Assembly: GCA_013115145.1 (NCBI GenBank)
Contig: JAAPAO010000055.1
Location: 35,985-99,984, forward strand
From: Perkinsus chesapeaki ATCC PRA-425
Lineage: Eukaryota; Protista; Perkinsozoa
Direction of reading: 5' to 3'
Length of the DNA stretch: 64,000 nt
A program made the translations under genes and the position numbers. Of the stretch, positions 41,445 through 49,320 are shown in pieces. Each line of letters starts with the position of its first letter. The first letter of the stretch is position 1. The notes under the pieces are model-generated. The model was given only the letters and a program-made list of their open reading frames with translations. It did not search any database and was not told where the DNA came from.

Positions 41445-43766
41445 TCAAAAGCCGCAGTCACCACAGTCGGTCCGCCCTGTCATCCATACCTGAAGAAAGG
41501 GTAATAACAGTGATGGTGTCGGGCGAGAAAGATACGCCTGAGGCGCGAATATTAGACTAGTGAATTCCCTCTTAAATGATGCTAATAATACCCAAAAATC
41601 GGTTGGAGCATTGTGAAACACGTTATGTATAATAAATCCCATATACAGTACGTACTATATGAAAATTTACTGTATGTTACTATAATAGAAATATATCACA
41701 TCACTCAGCAGCAGCAGCCTTTGCAATACAGTTGCGCCAATGACTATGCCAATACAGAAGGAGGTTCTATTGATGGTCACTTACCACTGCTGTGACACTT
41801 AAACCTGCACTCCCTACTCTGGGGTCCCCACACATATTGCTGGTGCATCCAAGCACAAAAGACGCATCGCTTGGATCAACTTGAGCGCCCGATGGCAGAA
41901 GTCCGAGAAAGGAGGCCAGCTGTAGGAACTCAGCGCCGTTGAGCTCTCTATTGCCATCGGCGTCATAAATGCGGAATGCATTAATGAATAGAGACTGGCA
42001 CGTTGGAGTGCACTCTCGGGATCGTCCACCGTCTATCCAGCCACGACATGCTGTTTGAAAAGTGAGATATAAAGGTTGTAGCGGACCGGTAACTTGACAC
42101 TCATCATTATTTGTAGTATTGGTGGTAGTAGTAAATACATCAAATCCACAGTCTACAATTCCATTCAACCAACTTGGGAAGTTACCCACATTGCATATCG
42201 GACTTCCTGTTAACATCAATGATTCTAATTTAGTCATCTGTCGTAATGAGTCAAATGGAAGCTCCTCTAATAATGACAGTTGAAAGTCAATCGTTCGCAG
42301 CATCGGATAGCGCAGGTGCATGTCAGCCGGGACGGAAGTTAGGCGAGACGGTCTAGCAGTGAGGACCTTCAATGCCGGCAGATGCCCTATGGTCAAGTTG
42401 TCTTTCAGTAAAGTGCTAAGTCGGAGGACTATAGCATTCTTATAACCGGACATGGTCTCTTGGATAACCTCATTCTCTGATTCACATTCCACAGTAGAGG
42501 TCGAGGTTGTCGTTACCCGAGCTGTAGTGAGGTATTCAATTCTTCTATACTTCCTAAGTTCCATCATATCGTCTATTGCACATTGTGATTGAATATCAAC
42601 AACTGCCATTCTGCAATCACATCTTGGTGAATCAAATAATGGATGTAACGGTATGAGACATTGTGTGTCAAATCCAGAAATCTCTTTGCTACAGTCGATG
42701 CCGTATAATCGATAAATAACGTAAGTGAACAGTGTGATAGCAAAGGTTATACAAGGTACCATTATTGAAGATGCTCGAACCTTCGAAACCTCAGTAAAGT
42801 TGCTTTGAGGGTATTTAGCCGCTAAGGCCAAATAACGGTCAATACTCAAAATGTGCATTAAAGAGAAAGCGGCTGGTAGAACGCTTGCCACAAAAGACAC
42901 GAAGGTGTCGTAGCGGAGGGAATACCAACTATTGGGCTTGGTAAATCTACCGGCTACTAGAAGTTGGCCGGTAGCGAATCCAAAGTCGACTAGAACTTCT
43001 AAAACGACAGACAGGATTCTTTCATTCTTGTAGAATAGAATCGGCGCAATAATCATATCAACAACTATCAAAGTTGTTTGAATGGTAATCTCCCGATTCC
43101 CAAGTGTCGTTTGAAAGCCTTCCGTGCCAAAGACATCTACGCCGCCCATCTCCAACAGATATAAGAACTGCACTGTGATATCAACAGTTTGCCACCAAAG
43201 GTATTTATACCAGAATAGGTCGCCTGTCATCCACGATCGTTTATATTGTCTTATCACGTTCTTGATGAAATTGCTCTCCAGAAGCAATGAACTTAGACGG
43301 CTCCGCCTATCTGAGGTCCAGCCCGTGGGTTTGATCCTGTAGCGAGATGTCAGAAATTTAAGCCTGAAAGCTTTCCATAAAAGCCTCAGAGCTTGCAGGA
43401 GAGCGACAGTACCAACAATACCGATAAAGATTGCACCAATAATATTATTAGTGGAGAAGTCATATCGAACATCTCGAGGGTTTATAGCAACCTCAGGTCG
43501 TAGAGCTGAGAGATCGGCCAGTGATGGTGGTACAGGTACGATAAGTTGGGCATAACATTGCATACCGCATACCACAGATAGGAGTATCTGAGCGAACAGA
43601 CGGAGCTTGACGGGCTACCGACGGTGAAGTGTAGGTTACTCACCAATAGCATGGCCATGACGGTGTAATAAACATGCCTATAATCTTTAACGAGGATGGC
43701 GGCGGCGTGAGACAATCGACGTGTAAAGGCTGATGTGCGCCGATTTGGCGCGACCTTCTCTGGAAC
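41445..43766 (-). CDS. 7TM-LRR-EF-hand protein, copy A
   Basis: Exons 43644-43766, 41785-43587 and 41445-41489. About 7 hydrophobic helices, Cys cap CLIPLHPLFDSPRCDC, LRRs (LRTIDFQLSLLEELP, LESLMLTGSPIC), EF-loop DADGNRELNGAE, terminal exon VWMTGRTDCGDCGF*. First exon/ATG not identified. Confidence 0.85.
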
Positions 43767-44630
43767 CTGAGTGGGCCGACAGACTACCACCAATAGTAAA
43801 ATCGACTGTAGAATGCCAACTAACGATAGCCAATATTGAGTATTGAACGCTATGGTGCCCTTACGACCAATATAATTCTCGGAGAGTTATCCCTCGGAAG
43901 TATGCAGGAAAATGCCGAAGAAAGGTAAGCGGAGCCAAAAGACTTCCTACAATTATTCACCAGAAGTGGTTTGAAAACAGCTATTTATACATAACGGGAA
44001 GACTGTGTGGTGAGATTATTACACAGCACCGATCAGAAACGCCAGTTATGATAATTATCATAAAATAGCAAAGATACTAGTTCCCGATAATAAAAACGGC
44101 AGTTCGATAAAAATCCGAAAGTGAGCCTCGATGAAAGAACGAAAAGCGAAGGGGATAGACAGGAAGGACGGAAATAGATGTCAAGGCAGGTTTGCGCAAC
44201 TATCGATGTAAATCGTGATATTTTCTGCCCACAACACACCATGCGGTAGAGAGCTTAACCGGTACGTGTGTTCTCAGAATGAACGAATTGTAAGGCTTCA
44301 AGCGGAGCGTATAGTGGAACAACGCGGTTCTACCACCGGCGAATCTACGGCGAACAACTCACGGAATGCGAGGCTTCAATCTCTGGTGCAATTCGGACGG
44401 GCATTATGGGAAGGGCGTCTCGCTTGTTGTTGTGATTGTGAGCTGTTGTGAGATGCGAGCAAGAGAACAGAAGCGGAAGCTGGTCAAGGATCCGTCAATA
44501 TGGGAAAGACACCGATCAGCACACGGTGCGCTACTCCTCCTCGGTGTCGCCGCGGGAAACGCAACTAGTTAAGCAAGCTCAACAACGGTAAATAGTGGTA
44601 GCATTAAATGAACATGTAAATAATGAAGGA

Positions 44631-46716: not shown

Positions 46717-47249
46717 CTGAGGAGAGTATCGTACCGCTAGTATACCACCTTTTTAACAGTAATATGTATTAAAACTGAGGGCTACTATACAGTGCAGAAA
46801 AGATCAGCGCATTTATTGATAAATGATTTAGAAAGGCGATAGAGGCAATTCATATTCATATTCGTACAGAAGGTGTCAAGTTTCAAGCATAGAAGGGTGG
46901 ACACAAAGGTGAGAGAGTGAAGAACGAAAGGGCGCGGCGCATATGAGCTAAAAAAAACGACATAGGCAGGGTAGTGCAAAGAAGCAGTTTCGTTGTAGGT
47001 TGCATAACGACCAACTCACAGCTTCATCGTTTCGTACCACTCGGCTGGACATAATAAAAGAGACGCCGCGAACAGCCGAGAGCTGTATGCGAAGTTAAAA
47101 GGATAAACCTGTCGAAGAGCGAGCGCCTCCGAAGTAGCAGCACTGATGGCGCCTATCACGCTGGATCACCAAGCAAGAACGCAAATACTAGTCAACGGCC
47201 AACAACGGTAAATGATACTCGATATGAGACACATGTTTATAATGAAGGA

Positions 47250-49320
47250 TTAGAATCCGCAATCAGAGCAGCTAGTCTCACCGCCCATCCATATCTGAAA
47301 GAAAGAACAAGGAACCACTGATAGAGCGAGATGAGTGCTACACCTACCACAGCTACGTGCTCCATGCTCACACGTTCTCGTTGACCTTCCAAACCACCGC
47401 ATATATAATTCAAACACTCTATAGCAGACTCGATGTCGTTACTGTCTACCACAACTCCTCGATCCAAAAGCCCGAGGAAATGTGCAAAAGGGATGAATTC
47501 CACAGCACTAAAAGCTTTGTCACCGTCGGTGTCGTAGAACCGGAAAGGATTGATGAAGAGAGTGCCACACAAGGATTGACAAATGCCTGGCTGTCCAGCA
47601 TCATTCCATGCACGACATGCTCCAGCAAAAGTAAGATACCCGTTCTGTAACGGACCGGTAACTTGACACTCATCATTATTTGTAGTATTGGTGGTAGTAG
47701 TAAATACATCAAATCCACAGTCTACAATTCCATTCAACCAATTTGGGAAGTTACCCACATTGCATATCGGACTTCCTGTTAACATCAATGATTCTAATTT
47801 AGTCATCTGTCGTAATGAGTCAAATGGAAGCTCCTCTAATAATGACAGTTGAAAGTCTAAAACGTGAATGTCCGGAAACCGCAAGTGAAGGTCAGACGGA
47901 AGGTTATCTATTTTCGACACTCTGAGTCCAATAATCTCCAGAGACGGTATTTTGGTAATAGCTAGTGAGCCACTCAAGAGATTATTCACTATAAGGACTA
48001 TGGCATTCTTGTAACCGGACATGGTCTCTTGGATAACCTCATTCTCTGATTCACATTCCACAATAGAGGTCGAGGTTGTCGTTACCCGAGCTGTAGTGAG
48101 GTATTCAATTCTTCTATATTTCCTAAGTTCCATCATATCGTCTATTGCACATTGTGATTGAATATCAACAACTGCCATTCTGCAATCACATCTTGGTGAA
48201 TCAAATAATGGATGTAACGGTATGAGACATTGTGTGTCAAATCCAGCAATCTCTTTGCTACAGTCGATGCCGTATAATCGATAAATAACGTAAGTGAACA
48301 GTGTGATAGCAAAGGTTATACAAGGTATCACTATTAAAGATGCTCGAATCTTCGAAACCTCAGTGAAGTTGCTTTGAGGGTATTTAGCCGCTAAGGCCAA
48401 ATAACGGTCAATACTCAAAATGTGCATTAAAGAGAAAGCGGCTGGTAGAACACTTGCCACAAAAGACACGAAGGTGTCGTAGCGGAGGGAATACCAACTA
48501 TTGGGCTTGGTGAATCTACCGGCTACTAGAAGTTGGCCGGTAGCGAATCCAAAGTCGACTAGAACTTCTAAAACGACAGACAGGATTCTTTCATTCTTGT
48601 AGAATAGAATCGGTGCAATAATCATATCAACAACTATTAAAGTTGTTTGAATGGTGATCTCCCGATTCCCAAGTGTCGTTTGAAAGCCTTCCGTACCAAA
48701 CACATCTACGCCGCCCATCTCCAACAAATATAAGAACTGCACCGTTACGTCACAAGCTTGCCACCAGAAATATCTATACCAGAAAAGGTCGCCTGTCATC
48801 CATGATCGTTTGTATTGGCGTATGAGATTTTTAATTTGGCTCTTCTCTGCCACTATTGAGCTCAAACGGCTTCGCCTATTTCTACTGGCCGGCTGGACAA
48901 GATTGACAGGTGTGAAAAATCGAAGGCTGGAAGCTTTCCATATAAACCTCATAGCGTGTAAGATAGCGACAGTACCGACGAGACCGATAATGATCGCACC
49001 AACAATACTAGTAGCGGAGAAGTCATACCGGACATCTCGCGGGTTAGTAGCAACCTCAGGTACTAGTGAAACGAGCTCAGACAGCGACGGAGGCACTGGA
49101 ACGATGAGTTGCGCATAGAATTGCATAGCGCACACCAGTGATAGCAGTAACTGCTATGATGAATAACACTATCAAGTTGCAGCATTAGGGTTCCTACAAG
49201 TGTTATGGCCATAAGAGAATAGTACGATGCTTGGTAACTCGCCAAGATAGCTGAAGCCGCAACCGATAGTCTCTGAGATACTCTTGAACATCTTGCGTTG
49301 CCATTGGGTATAGATTGTAA
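47250..49320 (-). CDS. 7TM-LRR-EF-hand protein, copy C
   Basis: Same exon layout. EF-loop DTDGDKAFSAVE; terminal exon 47250-47294 IWMGGETSCSDCGF*. Confidence 0.85.

Follow-up and report, generated by a model that had tools for sequence, protein, structure and literature searches.

Changing-partner mosaicism and probable interlocus gene conversion among three tandem leucine-rich repeat membrane protein genes of Perkinsus chesapeaki

Perkinsus is a parasite of shellfish, P. chesapeaki of clams, and its genome biology has been little studied. The stretch of DNA considered here (hereafter the window) comprises 64 kb of P. chesapeaki contig JAAPAO010000055.1 (GCA_013115145.1), with which its letters are identical. 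It carries three head-to-tail tandem paralogs on the minus strand, A, B and C, which encode an uncharacterised membrane protein with predicted leucine-rich repeats (LRRs), and a fourth, inverted family member, D. Along the main exon of A, B and C, near-identical stretches alternate with sharply bounded divergent ones, and the two copies that resemble each other change from block to block. The locus offers a very clean and statistically strong example of what is probably partner-switching gene conversion among three tandem Perkinsus genes.

Organization of the Locus

The array was retrieved through the annotated protein P0001 (FOL47_008519), the locus of which (L001) corresponds to window positions 37250-62188 reversed (24939/24939 bases match). 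As listed open reading frames (ORFs), the copies occupy 41767-43575 (A), 44579-46525 (B) and 47237-49135 (C), all on the minus strand. Their main exons lie at 41785-43587 in A (acceptor 43587/43588; donor GTAAGT after 41785), 44723-46537 in B and 47342-49153 in C, the last of these encoding residues 85-687 of P0001. Judged from the letters, each copy appears to have the same three-part layout of an upstream exon, a 1.8-kb main exon and a tail exon of 14 residues. The upstream exon, which encodes the end of transmembrane helix 1 (TM1), is found at 43644-43721 in A, 46594-46671 in B (~72% identical to that of A) and 49198-49275 in C. It is followed by a GT..AG intron of about 45-56 nucleotides (nt), 56 nt in A. 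The divergent member D (protein P0003; 52989-54893, plus strand) shares 38% amino acid identity with C. It lies outside the mosaic and served as its outgroup.

The tail is a micro-exon (A 41445-41489, B 44631-44675, C 47250-47294) that closes with Cys-x-(Asp/Glu)-Cys-Gly-Phe; in A it ends in C.DCGF and a stop codon. The C.DCGF motif is kept in Perkinsus olseni and in more distant homologs, and Cys-x-x-Cys tails of a similar kind end these proteins. A role for the Cys-rich tail in lipidation or metal binding could be envisaged. The 3′ intron that precedes it is ~295 nt long in A (41490-41784) and 47 nt in B (44676-44722) and C (47295-47341). The listed ORFs of B and C run past the donor into a hydrophobic stretch that is easily mistaken for an eighth TM helix, and that of B reads through the 3′ intron and the tail exon out of frame.

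GenBank gene models at this locus are clearly imperfect. One model (window 37250-52188) merges B, A and a downstream peptidase C1 into a single product of 1782 amino acids. Gene C is given two far-upstream exons (52188-52090 and 51916-51833), in contrast to the conserved upstream exon found directly 5′ of the main exon in every copy. All comparisons were made by reference to the main-exon ORFs, with database proteins taken as returned. Two public runs presumed to be RNA contained no part of the locus.

Predicted Protein and Its Relatives

The predicted product of A, B and C is a membrane protein specific to Perkinsus that combines seven TM helices with a Cys-rich cap, four LRRs and an EF-hand domain. 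The AlphaFold model of P0001 (mean predicted local distance difference test, pLDDT, 75; predicted template modelling score, pTM, 0.69) comprises seven long helices and four LRR strands, together with a beta cap rich in Cys and a C-terminal domain made of helices. Pfam places LRR_8 below its cutoff (14-16 bits vs 27) and the EF-hand is likewise sub-threshold. The predicted LRR fold draws on two further sources. Positions 370-462 of a family profile also match hundreds of generic multi-LRR proteins, and in Foldseek the LRR part of the model resembles the LRR domains of VLR, internalin, Slitrk, SERK2 and TLR8 (probability 0.99-1.0). LRRC8 channels were considered as a whole-chain match and rejected (TM-score 0.14-0.15, root-mean-square deviation about 37 Å), leaving a likeness of architecture only.

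The family profile was built from A, B, C, D and one P. olseni homolog and searched against 1.84 billion representatives, in which full-length relatives are few. Those looked up come from P. olseni, ENA assemblies, an MMETSP transcriptome, a dinoflagellate data set and P. chesapeaki itself (D and a singleton, P0006). The family can be described as an uncharacterised seven-helix/LRR/EF-hand protein of Perkinsus and the dinoflagellate lineage. In P. chesapeaki the exhaustive profile search found A, B, C, D and P0006 only. The locus of P0006 (L004, contig JAAPAO010000034.1) holds a single copy; directly upstream of it are three small tandem rhodanese-domain genes (L004:7311-9587). Both P. olseni loci that were fetched also hold one copy each and no array, so there are no one-to-one orthologs of A, B and C for comparison.

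A Mosaic With Changing Partners

Blocks were defined on a codon alignment of the three copies. Along the 1.8-kb main exon the order of sharing is AB / none / AB / ABC / AC / ABC / BC / ABC / BC / none / BC, with boundaries sharp to about one codon. A first-pass annotation, made from the letters of the window, had described such an alternation of near-identical and divergent blocks with changing partners. The alternation is real, and every peptide string quoted there was found where it had been placed. It had further assigned the N-terminus to A and B, block V2 to A and C, and both V3 and the region after the LRRs (except the EF-hand) to B and C; identities in 100-nt windows and the patterns of variable sites bear out each of these assignments.

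The N-terminal region (A 43165-43575, B 46115-46525, C 48734-49135) consists of blocks N1, V1 and N2 and is shared by A and B except in V1. In 100-nt windows A and B are 98-100% identical here and C stands at 75-82%. Within N1 (A 43351-43575), C is the odd copy at 46/49 variable sites, B at one and A at two; N2 (A 43165-43269) is again shared by A and B. The V1 island that separates them (A 43270-43350, B 46220-46300, C 48839-48913) differs in all three copies, at 37-47% of nt, and corresponds in the AlphaFold model to a low-confidence loop predicted between TM2 and TM3 (pLDDT below 50). From TM3 to the Cys-rich cap, the TM core (A 42556-43164, B 45506-46114, C 48125-48733) is alike in all three copies. 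It is 98-99% identical among them (95-100% for all pairs in 100-nt windows) vs 32-37% to P. olseni.

Two islands with different partners follow within a short distance. In V2 (A 42484-42555, B 45434-45505, C 48053-48124) A and C are separated by two differences, and B differs from them at 31-32% of nt. B is odd at 21/22 sites, A at one and C at none, and in 100-nt windows A and C are 98-99% identical and B about 77%. A link of 57 nt common to all three (A 42427-42483, B 45377-45433, C 47996-48052) lies between V2 and V3. In V3, which covers LRR1-2 (A 42286-42426, B 45236-45376, C 47855-47995), the odd copy is A, at 70/71 sites, with C odd at one and B at none. The V3 of B is 97% identical to that of C (95-100% in 100-nt windows, with A at 49-63%). 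The A-type and B/C-type versions differ at 52% of nt and retain 34% amino acid identity, zero indels and the hydrophobic LRR scaffold.

Sharing among all three copies resumes in cons2, which takes in LRR3-4, the C-terminal cap and a Thr-rich linker (A 42082-42285, B 45032-45235, C 47651-47854; 98-100% in all pairs in 100-nt windows). Beyond it, A has its own type of EF-hand domain (41785-42081; Ct1, EF and Ct2). The C-terminal domain and 3′ intron of B (44676-45031) match C 47295-47650 at 98-100% outside the EF island. Ct1 (A 41950-42081) and Ct2 (in A, down to 41785) are shared by B and C; in Ct1, A is odd at 54 sites, B at two and C at one. In 100-nt windows of the region after the LRRs, B and C are 98-99% identical and A stands at 40-58%. 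The EF island (A 41875-41949, B 44825-44899, C 47444-47518), which takes in the latter half of the Ca-binding loop together with the exiting helix, differs in all three copies. There, B and C differ at 37% of nt between otherwise identical flanks, and their windowed identity falls to 71-84%.

Does the variation centre on the LRRs, as the first-pass annotation had it? LRR1-2 are indeed variable, but they are the only variable repeats of the four. LRR3-4 with their cap (cons2) form the most homogenised block of all, and much of the variation lies outside the LRRs, in the V1 loop, the N-terminal TM1-2 region and the EF-hand domain.

Statistical Tests and Silent Sites

Recombination-type tests were applied to the variable sites by permutations that shuffled only the odd-one-out labels among them, a design robust to rate variation along the gene. 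The 382 sites with one odd copy fall into 83 runs vs 206 ± 8 expected (z = -15.4), and a label-by-block chi-square reaches 444 with 20 degrees of freedom (p = 1.6e-81). In a 3SEQ-type test the observed maximum descent was reached in 0-1/20000 permutations for each choice of child, and the longest concordant fragments of a GENECONV-type test in 0/10000 for all three pairs. The labels are strongly clustered, and the nearest partner changes along the sequence.

Synonymous divergence (dS) switches partners along with the blocks. In N1/N2 it is 0.05 between A and B and 0.5-2.2 to C; in V2, 0.055 between A and C and about 0.5 to B; and in V3, 0.09 between B and C and more than 1.5 to A. Among all three copies it is 0.04-0.07 in the TM core, which the first-pass annotation had rightly called homogenised, and 0 in cons2. 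In the C-terminal domain A is saturated against B and C, and in the EF island B and C themselves stand at 1.7. Overall, the close pair or triple of a block lies at 0-0.09 vs 0.5 to saturated for its odd copy. The shared tracts are far closer than neighbouring silent sites would allow. Selection on amino acids in particular blocks would not raise dS, and local selection on recent duplicates cannot account for this contrast. Given clock-like silent sites, a dS that changes partner by block also means that no single tree fits the three genes. The ratio dN/dS, of nonsynonymous to synonymous divergence, is below 1 everywhere, at 0.4-0.8 in the islands vs 0.06-0.35 in other blocks. A ratio above 1, which might have been looked for in variable LRR blocks, was not found in V3 (0.43-0.49, where saturation of dS makes this a weak test) or in V2 (0.65-0.80).

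Flanking DNA tells of an old duplication. No similarity was detectable among the intergenic sequences of A, B and C, save in a 153-nt upstream exon region (A vs B 72.5%), yet the coding blocks that adjoin this unalignable DNA are 98-100% identical. It follows that the duplication is old and that the near-identity reflects secondary homogenisation. The ends of the tracts are also informative. The tract shared by A and B sets in at the main-exon acceptor. That of B and C extends across the 47-nt 3′ intron and is lost at the tail-exon acceptor, the tail exons of B and C differing already at 8/45 nt. A recent duplication of whole units does not fit this pattern of flanks and tract ends.

The divergent versions of V3 are themselves homologous and old, as seen from their indel-free alignment, retained LRR scaffold and outgroup-like distance. 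The 34% of residues common to the A-type and B/C-type hardly sets them closer to each other than either is to D (28-32%) or P. olseni (17-32%), and Ct2 behaves like V3 in its distance to both. B/C-type V3 and Ct2 are the most distant from every outgroup (11-21% identity). On the letters alone they look derived and accelerated, with the A-type the more ancestral. V1 is a different case. It is hypervariable across the family, with 26% identity even between two P. olseni sequences, and its divergence can be put down to the low constraint on a disordered loop. The same P. olseni pair is 68-72% identical in V3, EF and Ct2, which are not unusually variable, and low constraint does not account for the depth of the V3 or C-terminal divergence.

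Third-position GC content (GC3) of the TM core is 0.39-0.40 in A, B and C vs 0.54 in D and 0.58-0.62 in P. olseni, and that of N1 is 0.32 in A and B vs 0.47 in C. In cons2 it is 0.31 vs 0.33 in D, that is, without an AT shift. If anything, the homogenised blocks show a mild AT shift, opposite in direction to GC-biased conversion.

Origin of the Mosaic

We consider it likely that A, B and C are old tandem paralogs in which interlocus (ectopic) gene conversion, possibly together with an old unequal crossover, has repeatedly made parts of the coding sequence uniform. An old duplication would have produced A and the ancestor of B and C, and a deep (A,(B,C)) signal may be left in V3, Ct1, EF and Ct2; in V1 the three copies are about equally far apart. 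B may then have arisen by a later duplication or by unequal crossover. In the conversions that followed, every copy would have taken part over the TM core, the link and cons2 (LRR3-4). For the pair A-B, conversion would have acted on N1 and N2, at the N-terminal end of the main exon; for A-C, on V2; and for B-C, on the whole span from V3 (LRR1) into the 3′ intron. The B=C tract might instead stem from a younger duplication, or from an old unequal crossover that made B a hybrid of 5′ A and 3′ C. Five short stretches (V1, V2, V3, the EF island and the A-type C-terminal domain) would retain old sequence, having been spared homogenisation in one copy or more. The first-pass annotation had already proposed segmental gene conversion or recombination, and the block-wise switches of partner and of dS, with the significant tests above, uphold it.

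Several points weigh against this account. Simple conversion alone leaves unexplained the persistence of islands of 72-81 nt (V1, V2 and EF) inside identical tracts, which would need separate flanking tracts for each island, rejection of highly mismatched heteroduplex, or selection for difference. Three sequences hold no unrooted topological conflict, and the argument leans on clock-like synonymous sites, for which the dS estimates are saturated and come from short blocks of 24-47 codons. The GC enrichment expected of GC-biased conversion was not seen in the homogenised blocks, where GC3 is equal or lower. Finally, public reads of the locus are available as k=31 contigs, which break in every shared stretch, and how the blocks combine within a copy is taken from the assembly. 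The B-type V2 next to the B/C-type V3 across the 57-nt link is an example; a phase error is unlikely there, over a distance that any read of at least 120 nt spans.

Can the islands be more than remnants? Selection might keep them apart, conversion unifying the membrane core and LRR3-4 while the LRR1-2 surface, the helix of the EF-hand and the loop between TM2 and TM3 stay specific to each copy. Now and then a whole island would pass from one copy to another, as V2 would have done between A and C, and V3 and the C-terminal domain between B and C. We regard this extension as doubtful. Were it true, whole-island exchange would create new germline combinations of sensing modules in a surface receptor family of a parasite, a slow and heritable shuffling rather than a somatic one. 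The matching B=C/A-odd pattern of V3 and the C-terminal domain, on either side of cons2, would then point to co-adaptation of two contacting domains. The mosaic provides a map, usable as a guide for functional work, of where divergence is tolerated or favoured (LRR1-2, the exiting helix of the EF-hand, the TM2-TM3 loop and the pre-LRR loop) and where it is neither (the TM core and LRR3-4).

Among alternatives to conversion between the copies, the import of patches fares best, and even this is improbable. Here A, B and C would be recent duplicates into which divergent blocks were pasted by short-tract conversion from outside donors, in effect a true cassette archive. The islands are indeed short (72-141 nt), sharp-edged and set in near-identical flanks, and the V3 and Ct2 of B and C are unusually far from all relatives. 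However, nucleotide and protein searches of the 64-kb window revealed no fragments like any variable block outside the four full genes. Word-based protein searches with the whole of B and with the variable C-terminal half of A returned only gene C and P. olseni homologs, and the exhaustive profile search added only D and P0006 in P. chesapeaki. The contig that carries the A-type V3 has single-copy k-mer depth in three runs, and the unalignable flanks of the three units speak against recent duplication. The first-pass annotation had gone further and likened the array to immune or antigen repertoires in which cassette exchange creates diversity. That suggestion is disfavoured by the few members, the lack of orphan fragments in the 64 kb and of other carriers of A-type or B/C-type blocks in the databases searched, the dN/dS of 0.4-0.8 in variable blocks, and the constancy of the listed blocks in a second study, described below.

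Less probable again is an artefact of assembly, whereby phase switches inside identical stretches of a polyploid genome created chimeric copies. Perkinsus genomes are reported to be polyploid and difficult to assemble (PMC8062965, citing Bogema et al.). The TM core offers about 600 nt of near-identity in which to switch, the k=31 contigs do not phase blocks, and the GenBank gene models are imperfect. Against this stand public runs from two independent studies (2020 and 2022). The intergenic bridges 43557-44703 and 46507-47322 were recovered with zero differences in the 2020 run and in the 2022 runs. The A-type V3 (42259-42472) was also recovered with zero differences in both studies, as was the B/C-type V3 with one letter different in one piece. 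Bar that single letter, every listed block is letter-identical in the two studies; both the tandem arrangement and the block types listed are thus real and stable. Depths for one-, two- and three-copy blocks stand at roughly 1 : 1.7 : 2.5-2.8, although k-mer depth is not copy number. In run X1, for instance, they are about 70 for single-copy pieces including the A-type V3, 113-120 for two-copy pieces and 169-194 for three-copy blocks. This rough fit with the copy numbers of the assembly is only suggestive. The incongruence of V2 and V3 spans no more than the 57-nt link, no choice of phase alters the three-way divergence of V1 and the EF island, and the counts of block types (2+1, 2+1, 1+2) would be unchanged even if phasing across the core were free.

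A history without any exchange is very hard to reconcile with the data. It would involve a star-like triplication followed by adaptive or relaxed bursts specific to lineages and blocks (the N-terminus of C; V2 of B; V3 and the C-terminal domain of A or of B and C). In its favour, three sequences alone cannot show topological conflict, dN/dS is higher in the islands than elsewhere, V1 is a disordered loop that is hypervariable family-wide, and B/C-type V3 and Ct2 look like long branches. Synonymous divergence, however, is raised at least 10- to 30-fold in precisely these blocks while dN/dS stays below 1. The blocks V3, EF and Ct2 are ordinary in the P. olseni pair, and unalignable flanks beside exons of 99-100% identity require homogenisation in any case.

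Least probable of all is programmed or somatic diversification, with LRR cassettes reshuffled while a clone lives, after the manner of antigenic variation or VLR assembly. For all that the organism is a parasite facing host immunity and that its variable module includes LRRs, in a domain predicted to fold like those of VLR, internalin and TLR, each of A, B and C is a complete gene that possesses an upstream and a tail exon, the 64-kb window yielded no partial cassettes, the same blocks (one letter in one piece aside) occur in studies two years apart, where no novel junction contigs were found (rare variants are lost from contigs) and the one loose contig end turned out to be copy A itself, and the variable blocks also include a TM-helix loop and the EF-hand domain.

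Three further proposals were considered and ruled out. Conversion mediated by cDNA does not explain the B=C tract, which includes the 3′ intron. Block boundaries do not mark ancestral intron positions, the main exon of P. olseni being likewise uninterrupted. The islands are not retained introns; they are in frame, without GT..AG ends, and align to the coding sequence of relatives, and V3 keeps its LRR scaffold.

Two other genes of the window may be mentioned. A gene with an integrase H2C2 domain near the array (L001:1-1054, window about 61135-62188) suggests a retroelement close by. At 6775-9579 on the plus strand lies an ORF of 934 amino acids with a PGAP1-like alpha/beta-hydrolase domain (E = 3e-17), unrelated to the array.

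Relationship to Known Mosaic Gene Systems

Trypanosome VSG mosaics, Borrelia vlsE, Neisseria pilE/pilS and lamprey VLR are diversification systems of the cassette type. They comprise one expression site or an incomplete germline gene together with tens to hundreds of silent partial cassettes, and change is somatic or clonal. The Perkinsus array resembles them in its short, sharp-edged variable segments between constant ones and, as in VLR, in the LRR modules. Unlike VSG, vlsE and pilS, it has variable blocks that match only their own positions in the four full genes of the 64 kb. Unlike VLR, A, B and C are complete genes with GT..AG introns, and partial LRR cassettes were not found in the window. 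With no donor archive found in the window or the protein databases searched, no incomplete expressed gene, and no sign of somatic change in the contigs of the two studies, the cassette or VLR analogy is unsupported, and interlocus gene conversion, a pattern better known from tandem paralogs, gives the better fit.

Cf-4/9 and RPP5 are clusters of plant LRR resistance genes with sequence exchange. Such exchange among clustered LRR resistance genes is also seen in the RPP8 family (PMC6771003). As in clusters of the RPP8 type, clustered LRR paralogs in Perkinsus would swap segments to give chimeric genes, with LRR blocks among the variable parts. The plant clusters have large allelic and paralog series and positive selection on solvent-exposed LRR residues, whereas the Perkinsus array has three copies and a dN/dS below 1. 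Also unlike the plant clusters, half of the Perkinsus LRR domain is the most homogenised block.

HMA4 of Arabidopsis halleri likewise has three tandem copies, in which the rate of conversion varies along the gene and produces mosaic divergence (bioRxiv 10.1101/2025.10.29.685298). The Perkinsus contrast is more extreme (dS about 0 vs saturated), with partners that change at least four times in 1.8 kb and three islands of 72-81 nt within long identical tracts, and it occurs in an uncharacterised family of an alveolate parasite. The array reveals no new diversification mechanism; it would place a known process in an uncharacterised Perkinsus family. In both HMA4 and the Perkinsus genes, near-identical and diverged stretches alternate among three tandem copies, and concerted evolution is mostly confined to coding sequence.

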